A DNA stretch of 64,000 nt from Cyanophora paradoxa CCMP329 (Eukaryota; Plantae; Glaucophyta), in the NCBI GenBank assembly GCA_004431415.1, contig QPMI01000005.1:558001-622000 (forward strand), in the 5' to 3' direction. The position numbers were made by a program, and so were the translations under genes. The notes below the pieces were generated by a model that was not told where the DNA came from, did not search any database, and saw nothing but the letters and a program-made list of their open reading frames with translations. Below are positions 1-35,850 of the stretch, piece by piece. Within the stretch, counting starts at the first letter, position 1, and each line of letters begins with the position of its first letter.

Positions 1-1871
1 CGACCAGCGAAGCGCAGCCGCAAGGAGGAACCCTCCAGCAGCGCGGTTCCCTCGGAGGCGGTCAGCGGGCAGCAGGATTCGAATCCGTTCGCGCGCCTGC
101 CGGACGCGCTGGTGCAGCAGATCTTCAGCAACCTCGATGCCGGGAAGGCGTACGAGGAATCGAAGCTCTGGGCGGTAGATCGGCGGTTCCGGCAGCTGCT
201 GCCTGGCGTGCTCTGGAAGAGCCTGACTCTGGATGTTGATCGTAAAACCCGCGCCGGCAGCTTAGACCCGGTACAGCGATCGGAAAGCTTTCAGAAGCAG
301 CTGCAGCGCTTCACGAACCGCCTACAGCGCCGTCAATTGCTCGGCGTGCAGTTCCTGGCCTTCCAATCCGTGCTGCCAACAGAGCTCTTGCACGGCCTCC
401 TGTCCAACGACACTGAAGAAGATTGCGATAGGAGAAGGATGGAGCACGGTCGCCGTGTTACGAAGTGCATGACCGGTGCGCACGCGCGCCGCTTGAATTC
501 GATCCGTCGGCCTGAAACCACTCAATTCGCCCGCGCAGGATTGTTCGCCGCTGCCGCAACTGCGGCGGCTCCTGTCAAATCCGTCCGTTTCGGATCTGAC
601 TGGCATTGGTGGCTCTCGGCCGGCCGGCAGCGCGAGCTGAGTCCCCTGCCTGTGCTCTCCCTGAAGCACGTGGCGTCCTCGTTCCTGGTGGCCCTCTCGC
701 CAGCATCTCTGAATTCAATAAATCTTCCTTGCTCGAACTTCTCAGAGGTGGTTGCCTCCGTCGCGAAACCCGGTCCGCACCTGTCTGTGCATGCGGCGCT
801 TTGTCATTCCGCTTGTTCACATCGCGTCCAGGATGTGTGCCAGCGCTCAGGGAGCTCAGAGCTTATCATCAGAGCGACTCCAGCTGCGACGATTCGGAGC
901 AATTGTCGAGGCAGAGCGTTGTGCGTTTCTTCAGCTTCTCACGCAATCGCGCTCTGATGTTCTGACCGCCACGCAGGCCAGCGTGATTGCGGCGTTCTCG
1001 GAGCTGCGCTCGTTGCGAGTCAAGGTCCAGGACGGCGCAGCCCTGCAGGAGCTCGCCGGCTGCGCGCACCTGGAGGAGCTCGAAGTGTCCATCAAATCGG
1101 GCGACGAGCACGCCGCGGACGCGCTCGCCGCCATCGCGGCGGGCCCCTCCGCCGCGAAGCTGCGCAAGCTCCACCTGAGCGCTGTCGATACTCTTGCTCC
1201 TTTCCGCCCTGAGTGCCTCGCGTCCGTGCTGCGCTTCACCTCTCTCGAAGCGCTTTTCATCCCGGTCCGTGCCCCATGGCTGTTCCTTTGCCTTCTTTCG
1301 GCTCACCGGATTTCCCGCGCAGGTCAGGCCGGACTGGGCCAACGTCCTGCCGGCCCTGGGCTGCCTGGCGCAGCTTAAGAACCTGAAGCTGCTGTTGGAT
1401 GTCTCTGGGGCAGCCGACGGCGGCGCGGGCCTTCTGCGCGCCGGCGCGGCACTGCTTGGCAGCCGGGCAGGGCAGGGGCTCGAGGAGTGCAGGATGCGCA
1501 TCCGCGCCAACAAGCGAACCCTCTGCTATGACGTCGCGGCTCTGGGCGAGCTTTTCGGGGCAGTCCTCCGCTCTGCTTCCACTGTCGATTTTCAGCTAGA
1601 CCGCGCTTTCCCTGCTGAAGTTCTTGCATCGGTAGCCTCCTGTGGCCCACGGCTCCGCAGGCTTTCTATTTCGAGTAAGCTGCCTCCGGGCAATGATGCC
1701 ATGTGCAAGCTCGCCCCTTTTCGCGAGCTGCTAGCCCTTTCTCCAGAGAACCACCCGGGGCTCTCCGTTTTCTGCAAGGTAACATTGCCGGCGGAGCTGC
1801 TAGATTATGCTGAGCAGATTCTTAAAAGCTGGTTTAGCAACTCTGAGGTAGTGAAGTTCACAGTTCTTTGA
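1..1871 (+). CDS. F-box/LRR-like protein, copy 1 (5' end outside window; intron-containing)
   Basis: AKRSRK basic motif, then F-box-like NPFARLPDALVQQIFSNLD...LWAVDRRFRQLLPGVLW. LRR-like segments (LRSLRV, LEELEV, LRKLHL, LKNLKL, LRRLSI) are split by short introns. Stop at 1869-1871. Four paralogues in the window. Confidence 0.8.
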
Positions 1872-1961
1872 AACCTTGTGTGAAGTGAAGCGGTGTCACT
1901 TCGAATCTTTGAAATCAAACAACGAACCGCTCCGCCCGGAATCGCTTGCGGAATACTCCTA

Positions 1962-3290
1962 ATTGCGCGGCTGGGATGGGAGAGGAGCGGGCGCGCATCA
2001 TGGCGGCGAGCGGGGACGGGTTGGGCGAGGGGCGCCCCGAGGGGGCCGGCGAGCCCGAGGGCGGGAGACTCGCACCGGGCGGCGGCTAGCTGAGCTATAC
2101 GGCTGCGGCCCGCGGCCCGCCCCCCGGAGCCGGAAGAAGAGGCCGTGCCTGCAGGCGACGTTCCCGAGCTGCCACTGCTTCCGGTAGTAGTCCACCACGA
2201 ACCGCTCCGCCCGAAAGCCGAACCGCTGCGGCCGACGGATCAGTTACTGCACGAGAGGGCGGGCAGGCGGCGGAGGAGCGGCGAGGGGTGGGGGGGGAGG
2301 GGGGAGGGGGGGGGGAGGGGGGGAGTACCTAGTGGAAGCCGTTGTCCGTCCCTGCGTGGGCGGTGGCGTCTCGCGCTGGGCACAGTTGCCGAGGCCGTGT
2401 CAGGAACAGGGAGAAAGTGGCCTCCAGGGAGAGGGGGGGTACGGCTTGCCTGCAGGATGGAGTACAGGAGGAAAGAGGCCGCGCCCGAGCGGCGCCAATG
2501 CAGGTCCACTCCGGGGTACAGCACGTACCTGAAGCCTCGTCAGGCCGGGGTACAGCGATCTTGAGAGAGCAGGCGTACCCCCGGTTGGTCATGACTGCGC
2601 AGCCGATGACGCGCTTGCGGTACAGGGCGACGGCGGTGAGCTCCGGGAACGCCGCGGCCGCCTCATGATCAGAGGCTGCGGCGGCGCGTGAGCGGGGCAC
2701 ATCGAAGCAGGAGGGGTACGGCTCACTGTCGATGTTGGGCCACAGGACCTCCGAAAGGAGGCGGTTCGCCTGCGCGCGGGGCGGGTCGGCGGGCTGCGGG
2801 CGGGGGTACAGCGGCGGGGCGGACCTGCGGGACCAGGTGCGGCTGCAGGTGGCAGTAGTCGATGGGCGCCCGCTGGTACGGCCCCGCCACGTCGCGCGCG
2901 GTGCCGAGCCTGCGGGCGGGCGGGTGTCGCGGGTGGAGAGGGTCCGGCGCGCGGCGGCGGGCCGCACCGCCTCGCTGTGGCGACCAGCTCTTCCAGCAGC
3001 GCCACGTGCCGCGGGCGCGTCTCCGAGTCCCGCCGAATGTAGGGCTGCAGGGGCCACGCGTCGGGGGCGCGCGGGCGGGGGAGGGGGGGGGGGGTAGGGG
3101 TACACGGACCTTGAGAACGCGGCCTGTGGCGCCGGCGACGACGTAGGAGGGCTCCGTGTGCCAGCCACCGAGCGGCGTCGACTCGAAGGCACCGTGGCCG
3201 CGCGCGTCGGCTGCGGTGGCCGCGCGTCGGGGGCGGTGGCCGCGCGTCGGGGGCGCGCTCGCGCGGGAGGGGGGTACGCGGACCTCGGCG
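1962..3290 (-). pseudogene. Inverted partial duplicate of KAT14/CSRP2BP (3' half)
   Basis: Near-identical to the reverse complement of ~28350-29540 (GAFESTPLGGWHTEPSYVV, PIDYCHLQPHLVPQ, VALYRKRVIGCAVM, DYYRKQWQLGNVACRHGLFFRL). Lacks the 5' exons, has a deletion ending in TAG near 2330 and a 17-bp insertion near 2088. Confidence 0.8.
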
Positions 3291-4064: not shown

Positions 4065-6052
4065 ATGGCCCAGGAGCGAGCAGCGAAGCGCAGCCGTAAG
4101 GAAGAGCCCTCCAGCAGCCTGACAGACCCGTCGGGGACGGCCAGCGTGCAGCAGGGATCGAATCCGTTCGCGCGCCTACCGGACGCGTTGGTGCAGCAGA
4201 TTCTCAGCAACATCGATGCTTTAGGGGCGTACAAGCATTCGAAGCTCTGGGCGGTAGATCGTCGGTTCCGGCAGCTGCTGCCCGGCGTGCTGTGGAAGAG
4301 CATCGAATTTGACGCCAGCGCAGTTAAAGCCGAGGACACCGAGTCGCAGTCGAACGGCTTCCAGAAGCAGCTGAAACGCTTTGCAGAGCTCCTCGGGAGC
4401 CGCCAGATGCTCGGCGTGAAGCATCTGGACATCAGCTGCGTGCTGCCTCCGAATTATGAAGAGGAACTGGAATACAGCAACAGAAACGAGAAGGAGATCA
4501 TGGAGCACGCCCAATGCATTTCAAATTGCATCGCTGGTGCCGCCCGCTTGCGCCTCCCTTTGAATCCGCATCAAACTGATGATGCTCGTCCCTCCGCGCA
4601 GGCCTGCTCGCCGCTGCCGCGACTGCCGCGGCTCCGCCCGAGTCGATCGATTTCCGAGCTACGTGGGACTGGTGGATCCCGACCGACAGGCAGCGCGAGC
4701 TGGGGCTCAAACCCATCTCCCTGGAGCAAGCGGCGACCACGTTCATGGTGGCAGTCTCGCCTGCACCTCTAAAGTCGATGAAAGTGTCCTCCTGCGAATT
4801 CTTTCTAACTGCGCTCGCTTCCGTTGTGAAACCAGGTTCGCTCCTCTTCGCAGTGCTCCAGCCTGCCGCCGCCGTTTGCTTACGTTGCGCACAGCCCATG
4901 CACAATCTCTCCTAAAATTCAACGTCGGGAACGTTGACACTGTGGCGTTGTCGAAGGATCACGTCGTGAGTTCTATCGGCCTCTCACGCGCACGTCTAGT
5001 CGTGTGCTCACTCCCTGTCGCCCCGGCCTGCAGGCCCGCCTGGTTGCGGAGTTCCCTGCGCTGCGCTCGCTAAACGCACGGGTTGAAGGCGGCGAGGCGC
5101 TGCAGGAGATCGCGGGCTGCGCGCACCTGGAGGAGCTCATCGTGTCCATCAAGTCGGTCGACGAGCACGTCGCCGACGCGCTTGCCGCCATTGCGGCGGG
5201 CCCGTCCGCCGCGAAGCTGCGCAAGCTCGTCCTCAGCGGCATCAAGTCCTTCTGCGGGGACCCCAAGAACCGAGCTCGTCTCGACGCTCAAAGCCTCGCC
5301 TCCGTGCTGCGCCTCTCCTCTCTCGAGGAGGTCTCCATCTCGGTCCGTACCCCTCCCCCCTCCTCCCCCCTCCCGCCCCCTCTCCCTCCCCTCGCTCCCC
5401 TCCCGCCCCTCTCCCCACCCCTCCCCCCAATCCCGCCCCTCCCCCCCCCCCCCCCGCCCCCCGCCCCCTCCTTTTACGGCCATACTTTCGGCCCCCCCGA
5501 TTACCCGCGCAGGTTCGGCCGGACTGCGCCGCCCTCCTGCCCGCCCTGGGCCGCCTGGAGCGGCTGAGGGTGGTCGACCTCACTTTGAACCTTTTGGGAG
5601 CGGCAGCCGGCGGCGCGGGGCTCCTGCGCGCCGGCGCGGAGCTGCTCCGCAGCCGGGCCGGACAGGGGCTGAAGAAGTGCAATATGAACGTCTGGTACTC
5701 GAAGCGAGGCTTTTGTCCCAGCGCCCTGCGCGAGCTTTTCGGGGCCTCCCTGGCCTCCGCTCCCGTAGTTGATTTTAAGATAGACGGCGCTTTCCCTGCC
5801 GAGGCCCTCGCATTGGTAGCCTCCTGCAGCCCGCGGCTCCGCAGGCTTTCTCTTTCCTGCTGCATACCTTCCGGCGACGATGCCGTATCCGAGCTCATCC
5901 CTCTCCGCGAGCTGCTCGCCCTTTCCCCAGAGAGCCACCCGGGGCTTTCTCTTCGTTTATACATTCATGGGCTGTGGTTAGAATACACTGCCAAGCAAAT
6001 TCTCAGTAATTGGTTCAGGAGCTCTAAGATAGTGAGGCTTATTTTTAAGTGA
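4065..6052 (+). CDS. F-box/LRR-like protein, copy 2
   Basis: ATG 4065 MAQERAAKRSRKEEPSSS...NPFARLPDALVQQILSNID. Same exon layout as the paralogues. Ends ...NWFRSSKIVRLIFK* at 6052. Confidence 0.8.
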
Positions 6053-6254
6053 AATAACACACGTATACGTAGCTTCGGAAGTCGTAGCTTCTACGGGAAG
6101 GTAAATTCGATGGGGCAGCATATGCATGCGAGTACTCCAGCTCTCTGCCAGCTCTCCGCTGTACTTCAAACTGGGAACAGACGACACATAGGGGTGCATA
6201 AAGTGATAGAAATCACTGATCATGAGTCATAGAATAGCAAAAGGGGAAAGCCGG

Positions 6255-6625
6255 GGAGACCGAACCTCTTCTAAGTAACTTCCGAAGTTCTCTACTTGCA
6301 AATTGAGAGCACGCCGTGACGGGAAATTAAAATTAAATGCGCACTGGGTGAAGCTTGAGGCCCTGAGGGGTGAAAGGGGAAAAAGGCAAGGCCGGCGGCC
6401 CGCGCTAGCCGAAGCATATGGCGACGTATACGTAGGCTAGCCTAGTAGGGGCCGGGCCGGCGGGGCCGGCAGCGGATAGCGCCCATTGTCGATGGCCCAG
6501 TCACTGAGTGGATCGGAGAAGTGCGTGTCCGACCGTCGGACGGTCGGAGTAGTCCCGGGTCCTCCAGCACCGCCCAGGGGTCCGACGGTCGATGCCATGA
6601 TGAGGGGCCCCAGCGCTGGCCCCAT
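6255..6625 (-). pseudogene. Degenerate copy of the MED12 last-exon end and 3' flank
   Basis: Aligns with ~19670-19890 (aaggcaaggccggcggccc.gctagccga...tcctccagcaccg.ccaggggtc) but is interrupted by many 5-16-bp palindromic insertions. Confidence 0.75.
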
Positions 6626-6858
6626 TCTTATTCTAAGGTAGCCTAGTAGTAAAGAATTAGGTGTTGAAATCACGTGCACAGTTCACCGTCGCAACTTGGC
6701 AATCCGCATTCCATGATGGTCGAGTTCATGCTGGTTCAAATTCAATCAATAGCTTCGATTCCGTGCACGTGGGACAGACATTCGGACTGCAAAAAGAGAT
6801 TGAGACACCGGCGCGGCGCCGCACATACCTGCCTAGCCTATAGCTATACCTTCTATTG

Positions 6859-7156
6859 TGTTGCCGATAGGGTTTCCTAGCCGTTAGTGCTTCGTTTGCA
6901 CTTCGTTCGCAGTAGTACCGTGACTTGACCCGCGGCTTCTCGCGATTTCCTGAGTCACTGTACCCCTGTACGAAGATGCGACCCTAGCTACTTTTTCTGA
7001 CTCTAGCTTGATACTTTCCGGTAGCCGTGTCCTAGGGTACACAGTAGTCTGTGATTAGCAGCTTTCTCTTGCAACGTGACAGCCTGCTCGCCTGCTGCTG
7101 GTACGCTACGGGAAGGTTGCTAAGGTCTACTGGGACGTATAAAACCTCCTAAAACA
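6859..7156 (+). repeat. 5' LTR
   Basis: tgttgccgatag...cctcctaaaaca; no difference from 19328-19625 by eye. Confidence 0.97.
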
Positions 7157-7597
7157 TCCTCGCCGGGACCAGCGCACGCCAGCTGACGGACTTGCTGCGC
7201 ACGTCCGTTGGCCGCGAGCGTGAACCCGCTGGACTACGAGGAGGCGAACGCTTGACGCTTTCGGAGAGCACCGCTACTGGCGGACGCACTCCGCTGACCC
7301 GCCTCGCCGCCGACGCTTCCCTTCTCGAAGCTTCGGACGCGCCTCCGCCGCTCACTCGCGCAGTTGGGGAGCAGCCCGCCGTACCGCGGCATCGGCTAGC
7401 TCCCTGGCTCATCGTTCGTGCCGCGCGCGCATCGGGGATCGGTTGCGGCGGTCCGACTCGAACGACGGTCACGGGCCAGCTCGCGTACCGTACTGCGGTC
7501 GCGGCCCGACGGCAACGTCTACGTCGAACGACCGCGTGATGGAGCGCGAAGGCATGACTTCCGGCGAGATGGCCCGACCTTCCCCGGCCAACTGACA

Positions 7598-10500
7598 ATG
7601 CTCAACCGCACGGCCCGAGTCGCAGCGGCGCACGCCGAGGAGATCGCGCGCCGGCGGGTCATGGGCGCGGAGCCGCCGCAGGCGATCAAGATGGAGGACG
7701 GCAAGATGGGCCACACCACCGGGATTCCCGTCTCGCCCAACGGCGTCTTCCAACATCACAACGCCATCCGTTCGGCTACTCGCGGAGACAAGAAGTACTC
7801 CCTGCTGGACGACGGTTCGCAGGCGGCGTACCACGCCGTCGATTTCGGTGTCCGTTCGCTGCCGGCGGGACTAACGGAAGTCTACCGTTCGACGGTCGAG
7901 TTGCACCGGTCTCTCGTCGAAAACCTCGTCGACGCAGAGAGCGAGCTCACGAAGGCGAAGGCGACACTCGCGACGGCTACGGAGGAGGCGGCCAAGGAGG
8001 CGGCGCAGAAGGCCGTCCAGACGCGACAGGCCGTCGTCGACAAACTCCGGGCTGAGATGCCCTCGGACATTATTCGCGGCGTCCCCTCGTACATTAAGAG
8101 CCTCGTTCGCATGATTGACCCCGCTGAGCGCAAGCGTCTCAAGGAGGAGCTCATCGCGGCGTACGATGGCACTCAACTGGACCGTATTTTCGCCAACATC
8201 TGTGACCTCATCGCGTTCACTGACCTGCCGCGTGACAAGACGGGCCACACTGTGCAGGCGCTGGACGTCTATGACACGCTCGAGCAGCAGATCACGGAGC
8301 GCAAGACGCTACACCACGGCCTGTACTCCGGCCTCCCGTACGAGCAGCAGCGCAAGGCCAATTACGACCTGGCGCTGAATCTACTGCCGAAGCTGAAGAC
8401 GATGGCGCAGGACCTGTCGCCGACCGATGGGATGACTCCCAAGGACAAGGAGACCTGGTTTAACCTCTTCTGCACTCGTGCGCAGTCGCTCATTCGGGAG
8501 GCGGGCTTTCTGATTGTGACGACGACTGCTGGGGAGCCCTCGATTCCTACTGGGAATTCGAAGAAGGGCGCCAGCATCAACGCGGCGAACGTCGACGGGT
8601 ACGATTACGACAACGATGGCGACGACGGGTACACGGCGCCGTACAGCGGCACTCCGTACACCCCACCACCTTCGTCGTCCCCTGCGCCCTCGGCCCCGCA
8701 CTCGCAGTTACTCGGCTCTTCGGTCAATCTCGTCCACACGACGCCGTCGACCCCGCCGACAACCAATCCGATCTACCAATCCGCCCTCCCCGCGCCCCAG
8801 CAGCCGGCGCCGGGCCACAAGCCCGTCCCCGGCTGCTGCGACTGGCACGCACCGGTGCCCGGGAAGGACTACGGCAATCGCCCGCCCATCGGCCGCCCCT
8901 ACGATTACGCCCGTACGCAGACGGTCACGGCGATCCGTACGAGCCAGGGCTACCCGCGCGACGCGCGCCCGAGGGTGAGGCCCGGCACCAACGATCACAT
9001 TTGCACACGTTGTCGGTCGTTGGGAGCCGCGGACATCCATCACTACTCTGACGACTACCACGAGTGTTGCTCTCACCCGTACCGTCGGGAACTACTCAAA
9101 TTCGTCAACCAAGGCTGCCAAGACCCCGAGGTCCTGGCTGCGGCCCGCCTCTGCGGCCTCATCCCTGGCGGCCCGCAGGCACCGTCCTACAACGCGGTCC
9201 CCCGCCGTCGAACTCTGTACCCGTCGCTCCGGCGCAGCTACAAACCGCCCCTTGCAGGAACTGCGGCGAGCACGGCCACCACGCGTCGGCGTGCACGAAG
9301 CCGGTGCGCTGCTACAACTGCGGAGGGAGGGTCACACGCAGAACCGCTGCCCCAGTGGCAAGCGCCAGCACGACGGCGGTCCCCCACACGGTCCGTCCCC
9401 GAAGCGTGGCCCCGATGGTGGTGCTGGCGGCGCAGGAGGCGGCGGGCACCGTGGTGGCCATCGCGGCGGTGGCAGGGGCGGCTACCAGAGCGGCGGTGGA
9501 GGCGGCGGCCAAGGCGGGACGGGATCTAACGCCACCCTCCTCGGCAATCCCGCCCCGATGCAGCGCCCGACTGGCCCCGTTGTTGACGCGCCGTCTTCGC
9601 GCCCGACTGGCCCCGTTGTTGACGCGCCGTCTTCGCGCCCGGCTGGCCCCGTCACTGACGCGCTGCCTTCGCGCCCGACTGGCTCCGTTGCTGACGCGCC
9701 GTCTCCGCGCCCGACCGGCCCCATCGCTAACGCGCCGCCCCCGAACCCTCGCCCGACTGACCACGGAGACGCCGTGCAGTCCGGTGGTCCTGACTCGGGC
9801 CGGGAGACCGAGGCTACGACGGACAGCCTGGCCATGGTACCGATCGCTCCGGTGCAAACTGTCCCGATCACGCCGACGCAGCCCTCGGCATCGGACATCG
9901 CGCACTTCGTTCGGGACGTCAACGCCACGACGGCGACGCAGCCGGTAACGTCGGCGGCGGAGAGGACGGCCCCCGTCCCCGTCGCCATCCCCGTCGCTGA
10001 ACCCGCGTCGCCGTCCCCCTCGTCGACTCACGCGACCGGCCCGTCGTCGCCGGCCCCGTCTGACTTGTCGACAGAGATGGAAACGGGAAGCCGTACTGCG
10101 GCCGAGTCCCGTGTTCCAATTCGGTGTGCGCAGCCCCGGCGGGGCGTCACTGCCGGCAGTATCCGCGACCTCATCAACGCTGGCCTCCGCCGGCACGACC
10201 ACACTCGCATGTCCGCCGCCTTGGCTCCCGTCACGTCCAAGAAAACCCCGCTCTTCACTCGAAACTTTGGCCGTATGCACCGCCCGCGCCCGAACGCCAT
10301 CAATCCCGTCGCCCGCGTCGCAGTCACGAGGTCGCTCACCTTCGCGGCCGCCCCCTCGGCGAAGAGCACGAACTCCGACGCTGACTCTGTGCGGGAGCCG
10401 AAGACCCGGACGTACTGCGCCCTGGGGGACCCCGTCACAGAGTCGCCGATGGACACTGCACTCGGCCCGCTAACCTCCAAATCGAGCACCGACTCCCCCG

Positions 10501-13500
10501 CAGCCACCTCGCAGCAGGAGGGGAACGTCTCGAAGGGAAGTGGGCGGCCGACCCCGAACTACAAGGCCCCGCCCGCCAAGATGCCCGAAATCGACTCGCT
10601 ACGCCGGCCAATGCTGACCTGTGCGGCCCTCGAATCGTCCGATTCACGCACGTTGCACCGGCCGGACCCAGCCGCGGTGCCCCCAACACGATCCAGAACC
10701 GCTCGCACATCACTATCTTCGACGCGAACAACCGGAACACCTGGCAGCAGATCATCGCGGGCACGAGGAAACCCCCAAACGAGGCGGCGGGGCCGCACCC
10801 GTGCGGCCCCGACCCCAAGTACTTCCCGGTGTCCGTCAATGACTACACTGGCCCTGGGGGCGTCGTCGTGTCTCTGCGTCGTCGCGGGCCCACGGGCACC
10901 GCGCCTGCAACGCCCCCCGTCGTCCACCAGGTCCTGGGGTTCCCGCTTTCGGTACACACTTGGGTGTACGGAATCGCAGCGTACCTGGCGGCGGCAGTCA
11001 AGCTGCACGGTGCCTTGTCGTTCTTCCTCGAGCCCCTACCGGGGGAACTCGGGAACATCATCATCGACTACGTTCGTAGCCACGAGGATGAGCTGCACTT
11101 CCGCTTCACGGCTTCAGGCGAAGTGGCGCGCAGTGCCAAACTCGACAAATGGTACGAGGTCGAGTACCCTGACTGCGAACGCGTCGACCCGGCACATTTA
11201 ATCACAGCCTTCGAATCCCTACTGCACAAGGCAACCAACGACTGGTTGGCGGTCCAGATCAAGCACGAGACACCCCCGGCGGCTCGCGAAGATGTCGACA
11301 TGGATCGAAACCACTGCTGGCCCGTAGCATTCCGACTCCCGGATGGAGTCATCAACGCACTCAACGCCCAAGTCCGGGGCGCTGACTTCGATCCCACGAA
11401 CGATCCGTCACACCCGCATCGTCCCAGTGTCTATGACGTCAACGCGAGCGCAGTGCGCAACGCTATTATGGATTTCGAACAGCGATACGCCGACATACAC
11501 GAGCAATTCCGTCACGCCGAATATGGCAACTTCACATTCGATCCATTCTACAATGAATTCGGCGCCGCCATCTTCAGTCGCGAACCGCAGGCGCGGGCGC
11601 TACTCCACGGTTGGTTGGAACAATTCGTTTACAATCACGCCACCGTCGACGCGGCGACGAGGCGGCCCATCACGTTCACTAGCCGCGAAGCCTACCGGGC
11701 GGTACAGATCGTCGACGTCCTCCCCCTGCGTCACTCCCTGGGCGATCCGGACAACGACAGCCTCCTTCGTCAGATCCCCCACATTTACATTGGTCACGGC
11801 CCCCACGGCGCGCCTGTCGACCCGTACGAAGGCCGCACGCGCTTCACTAACATCATGAACTACATCACTACGACGAAGGCAGAGGAGTCGCGCGCGTACA
11901 TTTGGGACCCGCGCCTCGACGGCAAGATCAAGCTCGTGGGCACGGACGAGTACATTCGTCGGAACCCTGGGATTGCGCGCAAGCCCTTTGTCCGACCCTT
12001 CGTCGTCTGGTCGACCGACTTCAAGGATCTGCGCACCAACGAGCCGACGGGACTGGCACGCTTCGGTCACATCCAGGGTGTTGTCTTCAAGCCATCTGGC
12101 AGTAACAGGCCTCCGCGTCGTAGTCCTACGGGGACCGAGACGACGGGAACCTCTGACGGCGACGACTCCAGCTCGGACAGTGGTGGCTCCACCGCCGAGT
12201 CCGTAGCTCCATCGGAGACCCCGTCGGCCGGGACGCCGAGCCTAGCCTCGCGCGTGCAGTCGTCCGCGTTCGCCCCCCACGGCCTCCTTGGACCGCTCAC
12301 ACGGCAGCACACGTACACGATCGCATACAACGACCTCACTAATCCCAGGACGTCGACGGATCTCACGATGGGCTGCTGGCTCCTCTACTCTGGACGGGGA
12401 CCGGACTACGAGCGGATCACGTCCGCGCGACACCGTGCCTTCGAGGACCCTGAATTCGCTGCCAGTTATCACTTGTACGACTGGTCGCCGCTTCAGCGGT
12501 CTCACCAACTCAACGCCCACGCAATCCTGGAGACGCTCCACGAGATCGAGAACTTTCGGTGGGATTTCACAACCTCTCAGGGCCTGTCAGCCGACCTCGC
12601 TTTCACTCGCGCCTTGTTCACTCGGGCGGCCTTCATCCTCAATTCAATCGGCCTCGCGGCGTGGGACGTGGTCCTCCACAATGACTTCCGTAGTCATGAC
12701 GCTCAACGGACACGTTTCTACGAGCGGCACGTACTCCAACGCGACACGCGCCTCCGCCACGCTTGGCCCCAACTCGTCAAATATCTCCGGGCGTCTCTCT
12801 CGCGCCACCGCGAAGCCATCCCGTTCCGATCCCCCGGAGAGCCTGGCTACCGGCCGGCTGAACGACGGGATGGCGCAGCGGGGACCGAAGTTGACGCGAT
12901 CAACGAGATTCACTATGGCTGGCCCAGCAACCGCCACCTCAACAAGCTCGCAAACGCCGACTGCAAGCCCATCCTTGGCGTCGGATACTTTTCAGCCACA
13001 ATGCGCAATCACCGGCCCCCGCTGCGTCTGTCGGCAGCTCCCTGCAGGGCACGCCCATTCGCCGCGACGGACGTCCTCATGAACGTGCACAGGCGGACAA
13101 CCACGCGGAAGCGACCTCGCCTCAAGCGGACGGCACCGCTCCCGCCAGCCAGCGTCATCTCCGGTTCGACACCGTGCACACCGTATGAGCAGAGCTACCT
13201 CGCCTCGCTTCGCGTCTGCGCGGCACGCATGTTGGGATTTGACGACGTCGAGGACCCCCTTGACGTTCCCCTCTTCGGCGACGGCGGCCCGTCAGTACCA
13301 CACCCCATTGCGCGAATGACGGACACGAACCGCACGCTCAGAGAGCGCATCAACGACGGCCGAATCTGTGTCAACTTGCACATCGCCGCTATCGATCACC
13401 GACGACAAGTCCTTCAATACCTCCTCACCAAGGCATTGGTGGATACAGGAGCCGCTGCGGACGTACTCGACGGCAGTATCGCCGACAAACTGCCAGGCCT

Positions 13501-16500
13501 TCGCTACAGCAACGCTCCGTGCGTGCACCTCACCGGCTTTGGAACGGACATGACTGCCTATGCGCGCATCGCATTCATTGCAATTAAGGTTGGTCCGGTC
13601 ACAATTCCGCGGAAGGTCCTCGTCGTCGCGCCTGGTCTCATGGGCAACACTCCAATGCTACTCGGCCTCACAACGCTGGTGGCGCTCAACGCTCACATCG
13701 TGCTCGACCCAGCAAATTGGGGAATGACGATCACGTCGCCTGACTCCTCGGATGGCGAACGATTCCACGTCCCTTTTCGGCTACGGGCCAGCACGACGGC
13801 GGCGTTCTGGTCCGATTGGCGAAGGACATCACTGTACGGCCGGGTGAATCGCTCGTTCGATGTTACACGCCACAAACGACTTCGAACACGACTCTCGGCG
13901 CACCGGAAGTCCTCCTCACTCCGCCACCACTCCTCCTCGACGACGACGGCTTCGACGGAGCCGACGAAGTCGAATTCTTGGTGCCATACCAAATTCACCG
14001 CAACCCAGCACACGGCACGTTTTTCGTGCAGATCTGCAACCCTCACAGGCGGCCTGTCCGCCTGCGAGCCGGAACTGTGATTGCGGAGACTGAATTCGGG
14101 ACTTGGCCGGAGTCCGAATTCCGTCCACACGAGAATGTCGAGACCTACCCCAAGGGGTGTTACAGCTCCTGGACACCTCAACAACAACTGACATTCCCGA
14201 TCTCTTCCGTAGCCGCGCAAATCTATGAGAACTTCAAGCCTGTTGTCGTACCCCGACGCTCGCAACCACGGCGCTACATCTCCCGAGCCCGACGCCTCTA
14301 CCCGGAGGTCTACCACCGACGACCGCCCGAACCCAACTGCAAGGAGGGCGAGGCGGCGCATGTTGGCTCCGTCGATGCTGCTGCCGACATCCCGCTATCC
14401 CACGAGGCCAGCGAGCGTCTCATGTCGTACGTCGCACGTGTCGTCACCCCTTACACTGCTCGAACCGGCGATCACTTCAACGACAAGGAGCTCATGGAGC
14501 TGGCCAGCTTCTTCGAGCCTCACTTCGCCCGCTTCGACTCCGAGCCGATGCTGGTTGGCCCCGCAGCCGGCCCCACGGTGCCCATCGCGTCCGTCAATGC
14601 CGACGCTCGAATGGAGCCCCGTCGAGTGACACTGCGCCTCCTACAAAGCCATCGCCCGAGACCATCAAGGCGATGGTGGACGCCCTGTTGAAACCATCGG
14701 AGTCGAACCCCGACGCCCTTCCCGAGGATCGCACTCAACTCCAGAACCTTCTCACGCAACGCCAGCACTGCTTCGCCCAGAACATCAATCCACGCGAGCT
14801 CCTGAAGTACAAGCACAGCATCCGACTTCTGCCCGGCGTCCCCGCCAAGCACCTCCCGCTGTACACCGTCCCTCGCCGGCTCTCTCCGCCTGCGGAGAAG
14901 GCTGCGAAGGCGGAAATCGAGAAGCTGCTACGCGACGGTCTCATCGAGCCTTCGCAAGCTGGTTTCGGCAGCCCCGTGGTGCTGGCACCGAAGAAGGATG
15001 GCACGATGCGATTCTGCGTCGACTACAGGAAGCTCAATTCCCTCACGGAACGTGATGTCTTCCCGTTGCCACGCATTGAGGACCAATTGGAGCGCCTACA
15101 GGGTGCGTCCACGTTCTCGACTGGCGACGCAACGTCGGGTTTCTGGCAGTTGGAACTCGACGAGGAGTCACGTGACCTGACGACATTCATCGTCCCCTGG
15201 GGAATGTACAGGTGGAAAGTGACCCCTTTTGGTATCACGAACGGCCCAGCGGCGTTCTGTCGAGCCGTGACGTCAATTTTGGGCAACCTTTTGTCCACCT
15301 GCGTCGTGGCGTACGTCGATGACCTCACGGTCCACTCGCCGAACGTCAAACAACACCTTCTCGACCTGGAGGCCTTCTTCGCTGCGATCGACCGCGGTAA
15401 CCTCAAACTCAAGCCCAGCAAATGTCGTTTCATGGTGCGGGAAGTCGAGCTGCTCGGATTCCGTGTCAGCAGCGACGGCATTCGCATGGACCCCAAGAAG
15501 GTTGAGATCATCTCCAAGATCACGGCGAACGAACTCCAGACTGTCGAGCAACTCCGCAGTTTCCTCGGCCTCACGGGCTTCTACCGGCGCTTCGTACAGA
15601 GTTACGCGCGACGGGAACTTTCCCTGCGAGACCTCCTCACGGACGCACTACGAGCCGACCGGCTCAACTTGGTGTGGAATGACGAGGCTCTCGCTGCGTT
15701 GGACGACCTCAAGAAGGCGATGTGCGAGGACATTGTGCTGATGCTGCCCGACTTCACGAAGCCGTTCATCATTTACACGGACTGGAGCAAACGGGCCATG
15801 GGAGCGGTGCTCATGCAGGAGGACAAGGACGGCCGCGAGCGCCCGATCGCATTCATCAGTCGTACTCTGACAAACATGGAGCGCAAGTACCAATCACCAA
15901 CGGAGGGCGAATGCATTGCGGTACTCTGGGCGGTTAAGGTCTGGCACCACTACTTCGTCTGCGGCCACCCGTTCACGATCCGCACGGATCATTCGGCGTT
16001 GCAATGGTTGAAGACACAGGAGCTGGCGAACAACAAGACGCTTGGGCGCGCGGCCATCGCCCTCAACCACTACAACTACACTATCGAGTACCGCAACGGG
16101 CGGTCGAACGTCGTTGCGGACTGCTGCTCTCGCCTTGCGGAGACGCACGCAGTGTACAAGCCTGGCGGCGCTGACGGCACTGACATCACGACTTCGATAC
16201 CAGACGGCGCTCACGGGTTCGGTGTGCCCGATGCGGGAGACTACGACGATCCACGCGAACTCTACCGCGTCGCCATCCACCGCACCTCCTCGGCCCTGCA
16301 ACATACTCTGGACGGGCCGGCGTGGATCCCTACTGGGGATAGACGCCGCGCCACCACGCGACCCGAGCACCTTGCCCCGGCGCCACCGCGCCGAGACCGC
16401 GACGACCCTCAGACTTCACGGCGACGTCCAAGGTCGTTGACGCCCGACACTCAGCGAGTGCGTGACATCGTCGAGAACGGCGGCCTGGAAGACGTGGAGT

Positions 16501-19119
16501 CCCAGATCACGCTGGAACGGCTCCACGAGAACGGCGCCCTCTCTGCCCCCGACGTCGTACCCATGGAAGTTGACACGCCTGCACCGGCCGCAGCGGCAGA
16601 CGAGGCGGGCGCGACGGCCCCTCCTGCACGGCGACGCCGCGGGGTGACGAACCTCGAGCATACACTCGACGGCGCGGCCTGGCTACCGGCCGAGGGTCGC
16701 CGCCGCCGACTTCAAGTTCGAGGACAGGAGAGCTCCGCTGACGGGCTTCAAGCTCGAGGACGGGAGAGCTCGGCCCGGAGGCCTCGGTCTCAGTCACCGG
16801 AAGGAGGGGAGGGGGTACAGACGAGGAGAGCGAGCCGTCGCTACCCCGTCCATCTTTGCGAGGCTTCGATCGTCAAGCAGCTGACCGCACGCTACGCGAC
16901 TCTGTGGAACGGGCACGACGCCGGGCCCTCACGGATGACGGCCAATCTTCGCAGTCCTCGGCGTCCGACGGAACGTCGAACTCAAGACGGAGCACGGCTT
17001 GGAGTGTCCCGCGCCAATACCAGCGACGGCTTGAAAAGGACTACGCTGACCGCCTCGCCAGTGATCGCGACAGACGTTCGCGTGCGGCCCGAGATCTGCA
17101 CGAAGCCTCGCGGGAGAGGACGGCGACGACGCTCGAACGGCGACGCCAACTGGCAGAGATGGGCCGTACCCCGTCTGAGATCGACGCGCTCGTACCCCTG
17201 CCCTCTGTTCGGAACCGAACCCCGGAGGAGCGGCGCAGACGGCGACAATCCCGCAAGGCGCTGAACGCCAAGGCATGCCCCGTACCGCGGGTGAAGCCTC
17301 CCAAGGGCAAGAATTCACGGCAGTCTCGATATGCCATTGCGCCCCCGTCGCATCTCGACGTTGCTGACGAGGAAGAGTACATGCACTTCCTGCAGCAAGA
17401 ACGTGACCTCGGTCGTCCGCGACCTGATCCCACTTCTAGCAGCGCTATCGCCCCGCTGGACGAAGGTGAAGGCGCCCAGAATGAGCCGACACACGTTCGC
17501 TTGCCGCGTGGCACCGTTGTCATGGACACCTGGAGCGAGGGCCCCCGCCCCCTCGTTGACGTTCCTCCGCCACCGACGATCCGTGAACTTGTTTCCGATG
17601 GGACCGCGGTCATCATGGCTCAGGCTCGTGACCCTCTTTGCCAGATGGTGTTCGCACTTCTTCGCGAGAAGGAGAACCTGGCGCGCTGTCACTCCCACTA
17701 CACTGCTGGTGAACGTGACCCGGAGGTGCTTGGGAGCTGCATTCTCTGCAAGTCTGCACGCGATCGCTTCGCTCGTGAAGCTACTCAGTACACGATCGAT
17801 GAGCAAGATACCGTACTGCGGTTGCCCTTGCTCCCCACTATGCGGCCTCAGATCGTTGTACCCCCAGAGTGGCGGGAGAAGATTGTTCACGCTTACCACG
17901 ATGACTGGGCTCACCGTGGTGCCCCCATTGTTGCTCGGCGCATCGCCTCACGGTTTTGGTGGCCGGGCATGACGACTGCTGTCCATCGCTACGTGAAGAC
18001 GTGCCGACACTGTCAGTTTGCCAAGGCTCACAAGAAGCCGAAGTCACAATTCACTGTGATCGAGTCTGAGCATCCTGGCGACTTGCGTCAAGCCGATCAC
18101 TTCCCTATGGCGCCCTCTGAGAACGGTCGACTTCACCGTTTCACACTTGTGCACATTGACGTCGACGCTTTTACCAAGTACCCTGAGATTTTGATGCTGA
18201 CGGAGGCTGATGGTCGTGCCTGTGAGTGGGCTGCACAAACTGTGTACGCGAATCACGGCCCTTGCAAGCGGTATCTCACGGATAACGCCAAGGTCTTCAC
18301 GCCTACTAGTCTCTGGGGCAAATTCTGGACTCGCCAGGGTACTCGGTTGATTTACGCTCCCACGTCCCACCAGTCCACGAACGGCGGTGCTGAGCGGCTT
18401 GGTGGCATTTACAAGCGCTTGGTGTATGCTCTTTGCGATGAGAACGGGGAGGACAATTCCCATTGGCCTTTCTATCATTATCGCGTGCTCTTCGCTCTCC
18501 GGACCACGATTCACGCTGCCACTGGTTTTTCACCCGCCGCTCTGCACTTTGGACGAGAATTGATGTTGCCTGGCGATCTTCGTCTCGACCTCACCCTGCG
18601 CGAACCTCACGAAGATCCCGTTTCTCTCTACGATTACGCTTTGTCGGTCGCTCGAGCCGCCCGCGACCAAATCTCTGCCGTCCGAGAACACCGCAAACTT
18701 TACAACAAGAAGTTGCTTCGCTATGGCACTGGCCGTGAGCCGCATCGTGTTTTCAAGCCTGGTGACAAAGTGTTGTGCTGGATTATCAGCGCGAAGACCA
18801 GTAACGTCAAGCGCACTGGGCCTCGCAATGGTTGGACTGGCCCTTACACTGTCACTGAGGTTCACTCTCACGGTCTTTTGTACACTGTCCGAGGCGATGA
18901 CACTTCACTGGTGTATCGCTCGCGCGAGGTTCTCATGCACGTTGATCTCATGATCGCTTTTCACGAGCGTCCTGCCAATGTTCTCGCTCCCGCAAAGCCG
19001 GTCGCCCTCGCAAGGCCCCCGTGCCTGTGCCGCCCGATCATGAGGTCCCCGTGCCTCCGCCACCTGCCGTTGATCCCGATTCACTTTCCGATGATGACAC
19101 GACGGATGACGAGTCTTGA
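7598..19119 (+). CDS. Gag-Pol polyprotein, broken by about seven -1 frameshifts in this assembly
   Basis: Zinc knuckles CRNCGEHGHHASAC and CYNCGG(E)GHTQNRC (~9250-9350). Protease ALVDTGAA (~13435). RT RFCVDYRKLN / PFGITNGPA / YVDD (~15000-15330). RNase H IIYTDWSKRAMGAVL...TDHSAL...NVVADCCSR (~15765-16135). Integrase H-H-C-C (HDDWAH..CRHC) and D,D,E (DHF, TDNA, GGAER) at ~17890-18400. Confidence 0.9.
9564..9743 (+). repeat. 36-bp coding minisatellite x5 (RPTGPVVDAPSS) in the Gag C-terminal region
   Basis: cgcccgactggccccgttgttgacgcgccgtcttcg and variants start at 9564, 9600, 9636, 9672 and 9708, contiguous with no spacers. Confidence 0.9.
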
Positions 19120-19327
19120 ATCACAGCCCGTACTGCGGTTTACCGGATTCACTTCCGTTGTCGATGACGTGCCCTTCACTGGGATGTGGCTTGCGAGTTT
19201 CGGGAATTCTCTCTTGGCGCTGGGTCAGCGGCTGATCACTGCTGCCTGGTTTGCCCTCAACCAAATGCGCAGCTCTACATCTCTTCTGATCCAGCCGCGT
19301 GGAAGCGTCTGTGAGGACCTGGAGAGC

Positions 19328-19625
19328 TGTTGCCGATAGGGTTTCCTAGCCGTTAGTGCTTCGTTTGCACTTCGTTCGCAGTAGTACCGTGACTTGACCC
19401 GCGGCTTCTCGCGATTTCCTGAGTCACTGTACCCCTGTACGAAGATGCGACCCTAGCTACTTTTTCTGACTCTAGCTTGATACTTTCCGGTAGCCGTGTC
19501 CTAGGGTACACAGTAGTCTGTGATTAGCAGCTTTCTCTTGCAACGTGACAGCCTGCTCGCCTGCTGCTGGTACGCTACGGGAAGGTTGCTAAGGTCTACT
19601 GGGACGTATAAAACCTCCTAAAACA
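19328..19625 (+). repeat. 3' LTR
   Basis: Identical to the 5' LTR; followed by the TSD ATTG. Confidence 0.97.
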
Positions 19626-19765
19626 ATTGCTGAGATGGGGAGTCCTTTGCGACGACCGTGTCCACTCTGACGAACTTCTCTACTTGGCTTGAAAACTGGC
19701 CGTTCATAGAATGGGAAAATGCGCAGTGGAGAAGAAGGAGCGAAAGGCAAGGCCGGCGGCCCGTG

Positions 19766-22700
19766 CTAGCCGATGGCGACGTAGGCTAGGGGCCGGCGGG
19801 GCCGGCGGCGGATGGCGCCCAGCTGGGCGATCGAGATGTGCGTCTCGGGGTAGTCCTCCAGCACCGTCCAGGGGTCGATGAGGGGCCCCATCCCCCGGGC
19901 CTTGCCGCCGCCCGCCCCCGCCGCCCCCATCGGCGTCGTCGGCCCGCTCGAGGTGCCCCCGCGCGGCGCGCCCGTCACAAGGGGCGACGCGGTGCGCGCC
20001 ACGGCGGCGGCGGCGGCGCCCCCGCCCGGCGTCGTCGGCGCCGCGCCCGAGGACGGCGAGGCAGGCGAGTCCGCCTGGTGCGCTGCGGCGGCCGCCTGCG
20101 CGCGCGCCGCCGCCGCCGCTGCCGCCGCGTTGCCTCCGCCCGGCGTGACCGGCGGCGAGCCGGCGGGACCGGCCCCGCGCGCAGACGAGGGACCCGCGGC
20201 TGCCCCCGCGGCTGCTGCCGCTGCTGTGGCCGCGGCCGCCTGCGGCCCCGCGCGCCCGAAGACCGACGGCGGGGGCGTGTACCCAATCACGTGCGCGATC
20301 CGGGCGCGCAGACCCGGGGGGTACTGCATCTTCAGGAACACGCCCTGCCGCGGCGGAGTGAGTGGGGCCCGGTGAGGGTAGAGAAAAGAAGAAGAAGAGT
20401 ATGTATAAGGGTAGAGAAAAGAAGAGCCCGCACCTGGAGCACGTCGGCGAGGCGCGCCTCCGCGTCGCGCTGTGCCTGCGAGGCCGCCGCCGGGGTACAC
20501 ACCATCGCGTGCAGCAGGTCCAGGGCCTCCGTGCAGGGGCCCGACAGGGGGTACGGCGACGCCTGGGCCCCCTGGGCGCCGGAGGAGCTGGGGCAGGGCG
20601 GCGGGGCGGGGTCGGCGTGGATGGGCGGGCAGGCGAGGAGCCGCAGCAGGCACGCCGCGAGCGAGTCGAAGGGGGACGCGGCGCCGCCGGAGGCGCCGGA
20701 GCCCGAGGCGGGCCGCTGGTCGCGGAGCGTGGGGAGGAGCCCGTGGACGAGCCGCACGCGCAGCGCGGCCGCCTGCTGCGCCACGAAGAGGCACTCGCGC
20801 TCCGCCCCGGGCTCCTCGGCGCCCTCGTCCGCCCCGCCGCCGTCCCCCGGCGAGACGGCAGAGGTGGCCGCCGCCGAGGCCCGCGCGTGCTGCGAGGCGA
20901 ACGAGGCGAGCTGCCGGCTCAGCTGCTCCGCCAGCGCGGCCCGGTCCCGGTCCTCCAGCCTGCGCCGCGCCGCTCAGGTGGGGCGCGCGAGAGCGGAAGA
21001 GCGAAGGGGCGCACCAAGAGTCGGCGGCACGGCCGAGGAGGAGGTGCAGGGCGCCGTAGAGCTCGGCCCGCACCCAGGGCTTCCAGCCGCGCCAGGCGCC
21101 CCGCGGGCGGCGGGCGGCGGCGGCGGCGGCGGCCGTCTCGCCCTCGGGCCCGGGCGTGGCCGGCTGCGCCTGGGCGACGGCGGCGGCGCGGTTCTTGCGG
21201 AGGGAGGGGATGTCGAAGCGGTGGCGCTGGAGGAGGCCAGCGAGCCGGCGGCCGGCCTCGCGGCGGACGGCGAGGCCGACGCCGTCGCCCTCGATGTGCC
21301 GCACCAGCAGCGCGTCGAGCAGCGGCGCCTGCTCGGGCCGCCGCAGCACCTCCCGCACCACGCAGTCGCCCACCTGGCCCTCCGGCGTCGACGCGCCGCC
21401 CTCCTCGCCGCCGCCCTCGCCGCCGGCGCCGGCGCCGGCCGCCGCCCCGCCGATGAGCGGCGTCGGGGGCGGCGGGGAGGAAGGGGACGACGTGGAGGAG
21501 GAGGCGGCGGTGGCGATGTCGCGCCACTCGAGCACGAGCAGCTTCAGCTCCGCGCCGCGCGCCGCGGCGTTCCACTCGTTCACGGCGCTCACCACAGCGC
21601 GCATCCGCTCCCGCACCCACGCCATCGTCCCCACCGCCGGCGCCAGCTTCGCCGAGGGCGCCGAGACGAGCGTGGGGGCCGGCGAGGGCGCCGGGACCGG
21701 CGGGGGCGGCGGCGGCGGCGGCGCGCCGTCGACGGGCGGCGTGGCCGGGACGGAGGTCGGCGTCCCGACCATGGCCAGGAAGTCGCCGTGGGGCAGGAGC
21801 TCCGGGGGCGGCGGGAGGGCGGCCGGCGGCGGCGGCGACGGGCCGGCCAGGATGCGCGCCTGCGGCGCCAGCGGCCCGCAGCGGTCGATCGCGTACAGCA
21901 CCACGTGCCGCGCCCGCGCGACGGGCAGGGCCGGCGCGGTCGGCGCCGCCGGCGGCGGCGCGCCGGCGGGCGCTGGGGCGGCCGGCGGGGCGGAGGCGGG
22001 GTTGGCGAGGCGAGCTCGCGAGCGAACCGCTCCGGCTCGCGCAGGATGAGGGCCGAGGTCAGCGGCTCATCCAGCACGGCCCGCAGCGCGCACGCCGCCG
22101 GCGAGTCGAGGCCGCCGTAGGGCGCCGGTGTGAAGGCGAGGGCGGCGAGCGAGGCGGCGGCCGCGACGAGGCCCGGCGAGACGCCCTCCGCGAGGCGGGC
22201 GGCCCGAAGGGCGCAGGCCTCCTGCGCCAGCACGTACGCGGCGGAGGGGTCCAGCCCCGCGCCGTCCCCCGTGAGGAGCGCCCGCAGGCACGCGACCGCG
22301 GCCTGCGCGGCCTGCGCCTGCGCCTCATGCTGCATCTGCTGCTGCTGCTGCTGTTGCTGCTGGCCGGGCGGGGGCGGCGGGGGCGGGAGGAGCGCGAGGA
22401 GCGCCGCGTCGAAGCGGCAGTAGGAGCGGGCGGCAAGGGCGGCCAGCAGGGCGACCATGCCAGGCACGCGCCCCGGCGTGCAGAGCTCCAGCGGGCGGGG
22501 CTTCCCCTGCAGGGCCGCCGGGCCCCAGGGCACGCTGGGCTGGACCAGGATCCCCAGGAGCACGGTGGCGTGCGGGGGCAAGGCGCGCCCGGGCCCCGCG
22601 GCGCGGCACGAGGCGTCCACGGCCGAGAGCCAGAGGGCGGAGAGGAGGACGGTCTGGTAGCGCTCGGGCGGCGTGGAGGCCGCCTCGTACGCGGTGAAGA

Positions 22701-25700: not shown

Positions 25701-27126
25701 GCGGCCGAGAGGAGCGAGAGGTACCAGGGGTACAGGACCTTCGGGTCCAGCAGGCCCTTCGCCGAGTGCCAGAGAAGCAGCCGCGTGCCGTACGCCCACT
25801 TGAGGAACGAAGCGCGGTCGATGGCGATCGAGGAGGGCTCGCCCGCCGCCGCTGCCGCCGCCGCCGCCGTTGCCGGAGCCGGGCGCTGCTTCTGGGAGGC
25901 GGGGGCCGCCGCCGCCGCGGAGGCCGCGGGCAGCGCCGGGGCGGACGCCCGTAGCGAGGCCGGGATGAGCGCTTCGAGGTACTTGACGAGGGTTTGGGTC
26001 CACTGGGTCGACCGTTGCTGCGCGCGGCGCCGGCGTCGGCGTCGACGCCGGGGCGGGGCGGGGCGGGGCGCGCGGGGCGGCGGGGGTACGCCGAATGCGC
26101 ACCTCGGCCGAGTTGGCGCGCGAGGGGTGGTACTGGTTCAGGTAGATGACTTTCACGTACCTGGGGGGCGAGGCTCGGCCTGGGGTACGGGGGCGGGGCG
26201 GGGCGGGGCGCGGGGGTGCGGCGCACCACGTGGCACGGAGGATGGGTACCTGGTTCTCCACCAGCATATCCAGGAGGGTTTGGCCCTTGAATCTGCGGCG
26301 GGGGTTCAGTGGGCCGGCTCGGCGAAGGGCGGGGGCGGGGGCGCCGGGGCCGGGGCTGGCGCTCACCCGTGCGGGACGGTCGACGCGAGCTCTCGCAGGG
26401 GCGTGAAGGAGGGCGTTCCCGGCTGCAAGTCGTCCTGCCGCGCGGGGTACGAGAGCTCGCTGATCCACTTCTTCCGGAGAGAATCGTCGGCCTGCATGAC
26501 TTGCGTGGGGAACTGCACGGTGGCCTTCGGCAGAGGAAGCGCGAGCGCCTGCGCGAGGGCGAAACGCGCGCGTATCAGGGGAACAGGCGAATGCAACGCC
26601 GGCTGAGCCCCGCGTGCCTGCGACTTGGAGCGCAGGGCCATTTCTCGCAGCTTCGTCACTTTGTCCCGGAAGTCCTTCTCTTGGATCAATGTGAAGACCT
26701 TCTTGAAAGTCTCGTACTCATCGTTCGCCTGCTGTGTGCCGAACCGCACGAGTTACGACAGGGCCCTCGGGGGCGGACGCAGCGCGGCCTCCCGCTCCGC
26801 TCGCACCTCGATGCCGAAAGTCTCCCAGTGGCCCGACCCAACGGTGGTCTTGTCGATGCGCTCCTCTGGCGCATTAGCTGGCACCGGATAGAAGTCCGGA
26901 ACGCCGAGCTTCCTGGAGCCACGGGAGAGATCCTTCATGCTTGGAGGCTTAAGCACATACGGCTTGAGCCGGTTGCGTGGGGCGGTGAGGGGAGACCCAT
27001 GAAGTCTGGGCCATTCACTTGGGTTAGCCGGCCGGGGCGAGAACTGCGCTCGCGACGTGGCGGGGAACGCCCTAGGACGACGCACCGGATGGGCCCCCCG
27101 ACCCCTCGCTTCGCCTGGAGCGACAT
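19766..27126 (-). CDS. MED12: Mediator kinase-module subunit 12 (multi-exon)
   Basis: N-terminal Med12 domain: LGVPDFYP...EE, PLRELASTVPHG/FKGQTLLDMLVENQVPILRATW/YVKVIYLN, then WTQTLVKYL and RLLLWHSAKGLLD. Plant-type C-terminus IDPWTVLED...GAIRRRPRRPLAYV. Probable ATG 27126 (MSLQ, then a GC-AG intron). Confidence 0.85.
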
Positions 27127-29542: not shown

Positions 29543-29818
29543 GTTCTGTGTTCTTGCGCGGATGTTTCCCATTGGCACTTAATCTTGAGAACAGTAAAAC
29601 ACGCCATACGTATATACTTCCCGCCCCCCGGGGCCCCCCCACCACCCCCCTCCCGGGGGAGCCCGAAGTTCAACGAAGTTCCGAAGTTCAACGGTTTAGA
29701 AAGTTTCGAATGTATCCTCTAATAATTTCGCTCCGAGGCTCAATTGCAAGAGTCTGACTATATAAACTCTCTGACACATTCTTTATAGCTATGAGCAGTT
29801 TCAGATCAGATTCAAATG

Positions 29819-31658: not shown

Positions 31659-32302
31659 CGTTAACGTTGCTGCTTCGCGGCCGTTCCTTCTCGCGGCGGA
31701 GCGGGCCGGCAGCGAGCGGCGAGCTACAGGTATCGCGGTGCTGCCTGGCGTACGCGGCAGAGCCAAACGATCCGGATCCAAGCGCTGGAGCACGCCGAGC
31801 GACGCGTCTACGTATACCCGTTTTACTTGTCGCCCCGGTTGTTTTTTCGCGGTGTTGCAAACTGCTCCAGCGCTAGCAGAGGACCGTCACGGCGTACCAG
31901 CACATGTACCGCGGGCCGTACAGGCTGCACGTAGCCGCTGTACAGCCCAGTGAGCCCACTAGCTTCGGCTCTCGTACAGCCGTTGCCAAGTTGGGCTGTC
32001 ATTATATATATGTCGATCGCGATATCATAGTATAATTGCTCTAGATCTGCACACGCGTACGGGGCCTCAGGGCTGTCATTCAATGATTGCTGTCATGCAT
32101 TGTCAGGCCTGATCATGAGGGCCAGCCCCTGCAGGGCCACTGGGCCAGGCCTAGGAGGGCGGGCCCGCGGCTCCCACCCCCGGCGCCTCCGAGGTCATCG
32201 GCGGCGGCGGCGGCGGCGGCAAGGGCTGCCAGGCTGCCAGGCTGGCGCTCGTTCTTCGCAGTGCACACGTGGGCACTGAAAGGACAGCGACCCTCTAGCT
32301 AG

Positions 32303-35766: not shown

Positions 35767-35850
35767 GGACAGTGGTCACCGCCGTACGGATATCTCAGTT
35801 CTATCATTAGCCGTATTGTCTCGGTGTGTGCGAATTCATTGATTAGTGGC

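Follow-up and report, generated by a model that had tools for sequence, protein, structure and literature searches.

In a spacer of the Cyanophora paradoxa genome, where an LRR/F-box-like gene and MED12 ended facing each other before an LTR element came between them, lies a crowd of small insertions of two exact shapes, in which a triplet X is followed by its reverse complement and a second X, either directly (X-rc(X)-X, the 6-bp form) or with a c and a g on the two sides of the inverted copy (X-c-rc(X)-g-X, the 8-bp form). We conclude that these scars are probably the excision footprints of cut-and-paste transposable elements of CACTA/CMC-like character, with a 3-bp target site duplication (TSD) and C...G ends, whose donor sites were repaired via flank hairpins. 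The window, that is, the whole 64,000-nucleotide stretch analysed here, has the short introns and short spacers described for this genome (PMC6704402). The spacer that concerns us shows 17 perfect scars, or 20 once nested ones are collapsed, amounting to about 17% of its bases (Table 1). The scars begin 11 bp past the stop codon of the LRR/F-box-like gene and are absent from open exons.

The gene that precedes the spacer belongs to a family of five copies in the window (1-1853, 4077-6052, 29845-31784, 37436-39382 and 47879-49930), which are 70-75% identical and whose last exons, each some 190 aa long, are all open; its assignment to LRR proteins is a lead only. On the other side, the parent gene is matched by the N-terminal Med12 domain PF09497, the scored exon being preceded by one that covers positions 26-38 of the domain, and its C-terminal part has a DPW motif that may resemble the C-termini of plant MED12. 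Three copies of the MED12 3' end are compared below: the parent (copy B), the copy within the spacer (copy A), which is a dead duplicate lying between two convergent 3' ends, and a third copy (copy C). Partial duplicates of this end, the first of them within copy C, lie at 35848-37212 (90% identical) and 39899-40555 (86% identical), and a GATA microsatellite of 20 copies (40567-40647) abuts the end of one such duplicate. One contig of sequencing run X5 fuses the end of an LRR gene to a 22-nt match to the MED12 end fragment, joining window positions 5950 and 6559; this contig is paralogous and from outside the window, and possibly represents a further composite copy elsewhere. The remainder of the spacer, 6626-6858, aligns with its upstream part no better than shuffled sequence does.

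Copies A and B are now separated by an intact LTR retrotransposon of 12.8 kb, across what was earlier a gap of about 270 bp. Its order of protease, reverse transcriptase, RNase H and integrase is that of the Ty3/gypsy type, its long open reading frames at 7418-11201 have no Pfam match, and its LTR is multi-copy in the reads, at 30-55 times the single-copy depth. No 8-bp scar occurs over its 12.8 kb, and it is therefore either too young or avoided; repeats in C. paradoxa are methylated (PMC12344493).

Table 1. Positions of the scars, the MED12 copies and the neighbouring features within the window.
Feature	Position	Strand	Remarks
LRR/F-box-like gene, open last exon (~190 aa)	5470-6052	+	scar-free; one of five copies in the window
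Scar-rich spacer	6053-6858		between convergent 3' ends of the LRR/F-box-like gene and MED12 (before the LTR element)
Nested scar	6213-6229		6-bp scar (TGA) centred in 8-bp scar (TCA)
Copy A, dead duplicate of MED12 C-terminal coding end and 3' UTR	6253-6623	-	frame broken by scars
8-bp scar, X=TTC	6280-6290		short state in parent
8-bp scar, X=ACG	6311-6321		alignment to parent B
8-bp scar, X=AGG	6358-6368		alignment to parent B
6-bp scar, X=ATG	6412-6420		one later substitution, in first copy of X
6-bp scar, X=GTA	6426-6434		alignment to parent B
8-bp scar, X=TAG	6438-6448		alignment to parent B
5-bp insertion, ambiguous register	6449-6462		clipped 6-bp scar or simple duplication fit equally
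8-bp scar, X=TGG, with off-register 8-bp scar, X=AGT (6499-6509)	6493-6511		collapse of inner scar
Nested scar	6527-6545		8-bp scar X=GAC centred in 8-bp scar X=GTC
7-bp insertion	6553-6562		best read as 8-bp scar X=TCC minus one base
8-bp scar, X=GTC	6580-6590		alignment to parent B
8-bp scar, X=ATG	6592-6602		alignment to parent B
8-bp scar, X=TAG	6639-6649		outside parent alignment
Four further scars past 6649	6671-6846		at 6671, 6692, 6763 and 6838
LTR retrotransposon, young	6859-19625	+	identical 298-bp LTRs, TG...CA, 4-bp TSD ATTG
Parent copy B, end of last MED12 exon and 3' UTR	19660-19895	-	stop 19766-19768; scar-free
MED12 exon	26220-26291	-	Pfam Med12 positions 39-61, 32.2 bits, cut-off 25
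Copy C, third copy of MED12 3' end	35848-37300	+	adjoins another LRR-like gene copy, same junction

The bases of the hotspot (6213-6649) are real and not an assembly error, because the contigs of three DNA runs (2012, 2019 and 2024, one of them possibly the source sample) match the window without a differing letter or gap; in each run a single Logan contig covers 5624-6888, at a depth like that of other single-copy contigs. No polymorphism was seen at the hotspot among these contigs. Low-depth contigs from a run that we guess to be RNA cover 5624-6126, the 3' end of the LRR gene, and 6514-6670, part of the hotspot; DNA carry-over could explain them.

All strings quoted in the initial annotation were recovered at the positions it gave, and its claim of more than 10 events in about 440 bp holds. 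The hotspot contains nine perfect motifs of the 8-bp form against 0.01 expected from dinucleotide shuffles (maximum 2 in 2000) and two perfect motifs of the 6-bp form against 0.15. To these is added TGG-c-CCA-g-TGG at 6493-6511, which had been missed and becomes visible only after the AGT scar within it is collapsed. By the same motif count the corresponding region of the parent, 19626-19900, has zero perfect scars of either form.

The third copy and purifying selection support the original proposal that, measured against the MED12 3' end, these motifs are insertions. In the alignable core 148 bp of copy B correspond to 231 bp of copy A; with ten scars removed (eight perfect, one with a single mismatch and one lacking a base) there remain 137 matches, 8 substitutions and residual indels of +5, +5, +1 and -3. 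Copies B and C both have the short state at eight of the ten events, and at the other two copy C is deleted. The last exons of B and C differ by pS 0.11 and pN 0.037 (pN/pS 0.33), so the short frame is the selected frame. Copy C also has scar-like insertions of its own near its 3' end, at places where A and B agree; they crowd into its final 110 bp. Its last-exon frame is open up to the DPW motif.

It is accordingly very improbable that the long state is ancestral, the parent having lost bases by deletion between 3-bp repeats, or that the additional bases are errors of assembly. The latter is contradicted by the base for base agreement of the three runs. Short direct repeats readily allow deletion between them, and no alignment to a MED12 orthologue was obtained: with the gene taken exon by exon, word searches with C- and N-terminal sequences, the ESM Atlas, PDB sequences and a large representative search gave no informative match, a blank that does not amount to absence. 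Against an ancestral long state, however, that state breaks the MED12 frame, whereas the short frame reaches the stop and is under purifying selection; A and C each carry insertions of their own at places where the remaining two copies are alike; and nine motifs where 0.01 are expected would still need a generator.

The initial annotation also held that insertions arise at a rate comparable to that of substitutions. This is upheld in the core, with ten scars against eight substitutions, but fails beyond gene flanks, where the count over other duplicate pairs of the window is about 3 scars to 128 substitutions (a post hoc comparison, the hotspot having been picked for its density). Parity is therefore local, being confined to gene flanks. 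The exon body of copy C, which may be near neutral, has almost no scars. A dispersed duplicate (1959-3200 and 28350-29543; 90% identical), which lies past the 3' ends of LRR genes, has 61 substitutions and 1-2 scars. Steady accumulation of the core scars over 5.5% divergence fits the proportion that are still perfect, 8 of 10 against an estimated 76% or so, in a small sample.

Nesting of scars had been read as repeated re-use of earlier scars, a claim that we do not sustain, since nesting stays near the prediction from local density. Two centre nests and one off-register nest occur in the hotspot. Random placement of scars at the same density gives 0.35 centre nests, or 0.5 with a weak C-NNN-G flank bias, and 3-4 overlaps; two or more centre nests arise in this way with P 0.04-0.09, and the overlaps seen are about as many as predicted. 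The other scar clusters of the window contain no centre nest, and window-wide a rough estimate expects about one where two are seen. At 13 scars per 500 bp, the hotspot is less dense than clusters at 57.5 kb (18) and 31.8 kb (16); these (57550-58050 and 31785-32350) consist mostly of perfect scars of the 6-bp class. What distinguishes the hotspot is its excess of the 8-bp class, with 8-bp and 6-bp scars in the ratio 10:7 against 32:115 elsewhere (p 0.002). The 8-bp class dominates the 3' flanks of three LRR/F-box-like copies (10/17, 4/5 and 2/2).

Across the window both shapes obey a strict grammar. There are 42 instances of the 8-bp form where 6.2 are expected, and of the 16 possible spacer pairs only c/g is strongly enriched; after exclusion of the LTR element, MED12 and pure-GC triplets, the 8-bp form numbers 37 against 0.7 and the 6-bp form 121 against 10. 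All 37 scars of the c..g class have arms of 3, with none at arms of 4 or 5 and only the control level at arms of 2. The scars are symmetric with respect to strand, X spans 23 of the 32 triplet classes, and the spacer is constant whatever X and the flanks may be, which is why we take c and g to come from outside the site. Flank preference is weak, C standing at -1 in 0.42-0.44 of cases against a background of about 0.32, and scar-rich DNA cannot be told from scar-poor DNA by its CpG depletion. One-sided hybrids, X-c-rc(X)-X or X-rc(X)-g-X, are absent as a class: nine were found where chance gives 5.6 and independent ends would give about 127, which implies that nicks fall in two registers, both fixed, and that one of these lies 1 nt inside the element.

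Other forms did not withstand the same counting. CC...GG ends, at which the initial annotation had hinted, find no support, since X-cc-rc(X)-gg-X has 0 matches and the 7-bp case reads equally as TCC-c-GG-g-TCC. The reported GGC-cg-GGC is an insertion, of 5 bp at 6449-6462, but its register is ambiguous and the X-cg-X form assigned to it is not enriched (51 against 58 expected); neither plain TSD doublings nor X-cg-X clearly make up a class. A putative third class with 2-bp arms was likewise rejected, its excess being mostly GC codon periodicity and its c..g count equal to the control.

The same regularities bear on whether a transposon is needed at all. Breaks repaired by template switching or by polymerase-theta-like fold-back could yield micro inverted triplications with an untemplated c and g, and we consider such a host process unlikely. 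Templated insertions vary in length, while the arms are strictly 3 nt here; and a fixed c on both strands together with the lack of one-sided forms calls for a symmetrical external source, even if the 6-bp class needs no outside base, the concentration in gene flanks could mirror break frequency and the window holds no source element. On the last point, scans for terminal inverted repeats (TIRs) with 3-bp TSDs gave only chance-level pairs, none with CACT(A/G) TIRs; no intact element, transposase or pair of filled and empty sites was found in the window, the transposase search covering a subset of its open reading frames, and no filled site paired with a scar was found among window duplicates or the contigs of four runs.

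The original interpretation of the scars as excision footprints looks borne out by their fixed shapes, the outside origin of c/g and the polarity of insertion. From shapes, counts, polarity, coupling and location we infer a transposon origin, a hairpin, nick registers and a family, as follows. Insertion would duplicate any 3 bp, giving X-element-X. At excision the non-transferred strand would be nicked and the 3'-OH of the flank would attack the opposite strand, forming one hairpin per flank; in hAT, Transib, RAG and MULE elements hairpins are sealed on flanking DNA and are opened and joined by host enzymes (PMC5499845). A nick at the border would leave the left flank with the arm X-rc(X) and the right flank with rc(X)-X, and a nick 1 nt inside the element would retain its terminal C on each side, giving the arm X-C-rc(X). 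Once host enzymes had opened the hairpins, the 3' tails could anneal via the 3-bp match of rc(X) and X that the TSD guarantees, and fill-in would produce X-rc(X)-X or X-c-rc(X)-g-X, exactly the two shapes observed; were the tails to pair through X instead, the site would be restored without trace. The use of the same register at both ends would imply either two element families or enzymes or a concerted cut. Given elements that prefer gene-flanking DNA, scars would pile up at about the substitution rate in the 0.8-kb spacer, and the nests would be chance at that density. Such a rate is within reason. Every jump in a haploid may leave a scar behind, and therefore a few hundred copies, each making about 1e-5 jumps per generation into about 10 Mb of flanks (assumed numbers), would equal a substitution rate near 3e-10.

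The same chemistry might operate without lasting insertion, the element being joined to a new target and then immediately reversed or cut out again. In a haploid, ordinary jumping is enough to give one scar per jump, and no precedent for such hit-and-run transposition was found in the literature; we therefore think it improbable, notwithstanding that coupled ends and the retained c/g fit it equally well and that scars are very dense with no filled site in any duplicate pair of the window. Within the preferred account of excision footprints, we offer more tentatively, and with real doubt, the proposal that an uncharacterised DDE transposase first makes a nick 1 nt within its own ends and then forms the flank hairpin and, with a border-nicking relative, acts as a rule-bound mutator; in gene flanks it would work at or above the substitution rate, and it might do so without lasting insertions. 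For CACTA transposases, no paper was found that describes hairpins on the flank or nicking inside the element. If the proposal is true, the nick 1 nt inside would be a third register for DDE enzymes beside those of hAT and RAG, and the mutator's scars would be an event-by-event record of past transposition.

Schwarz-Sommer et al. in 1985 reportedly regarded transposon footprints as a main source of DNA diversity. Footprints are usually irregular and thus hard to quantify; here, exact marks and a conserved MED12 parent calibrate them against substitutions, and excision rate, target preference and timing become measurable. The shapes also predict the cleavage chemistry of a transposase class for which no described mechanism was found: flanks sealed as hairpins, nicking either at the border or 1 nt within the element, and a coupling of the two ends. 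If the scars are excision footprints, these would be a main local source of mutation next to genes. Such scars will in any case distort alignment, repeat annotation and divergence estimates in the non-coding DNA of C. paradoxa. The genome paper for this species makes no mention of such footprints or of CACTA elements, and in the literature, as incompletely as it was covered, we found no description of these scars.

Among known systems, the hotspot scars behave most like a CACTA-type hairpin excision footprint, and CACTA/En-Spm (CMC; Tam1, Spm, Tgm9, Tdv1) is our candidate family. Its members share a variable 3-bp TSD, C...G termini and small rearrangements at donor sites, and some CACTA footprints carry inverted TSD copies. 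The variable 3-bp duplication is matched here by arms of 3 and 23 triplet classes, as read from the scars; C...G termini would fit the fixed c/g spacer of the 8-bp class, although a single base does not identify a family and the 6-bp class has no spacer at all. CACTA elements are defined by their variable 3-bp TSD and CACT(A/G) tips (PMC4423477; PMC3193017). Unlike their footprints, the scars are dominated by two exact forms, keep the terminal C/G symmetrically and make up so large a share of local bases, whereas the excision sites in the literature vary among themselves and include deletions and filler sequence (PMC4423477, PMC5873905).

The hAT elements (Ac/Ds, Hermes) also leave palindromic insertions from opened flank hairpins joined via microhomology, and in Ac/Ds the base complementary to the flanking one stands at the centre of the palindrome (PMC5873905). 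Their TSD is 8 bp, however, where the present arms are 3 and the centre is a fixed C; 31 of the 37 c/g scars violate the flank-complement rule, and a hAT-type model with a 5-bp target was rejected as well. RAG and Transib elements have a 5-bp TSD, variable joints and no retained terminal base, and no excess was seen at arms of 5. They too form the hairpin on the flank (PMC5499845), and nicking at the border would yield the 6-bp form, which has no spacer. PIF/Harbinger, with a TAA/TTA TSD and ends that start with G (PMC4423477), was rejected because X can be any triplet, the TAA class accounting for 1 of 42; Tc1/mariner, which leaves a TA TSD with 2-3 terminal bases and no inverted copy, was rejected on the variable 3-bp X with its inverted copy and on the lack of X-cg-X enrichment.

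The nearest parallel in location comes from grasses, where excision is a source of mutation and divergence at gene starts and ends (PMC5023962, PMC4423477) and where rice DNA transposons favour just these positions (PMC5023962). Rice scars are rare and irregular; those of the hotspot are uniform, countable and locally as numerous as substitutions. Hairpin-type footprints and excision-linked mutation near genes were thus already known, as irregular and sparse events (PMC5873905, PMC5023962, PMC4423477); new at this hotspot are a read-confirmed count calibrated against a parent, a test against independent ends, and negative results for re-use and for CC...GG ends.
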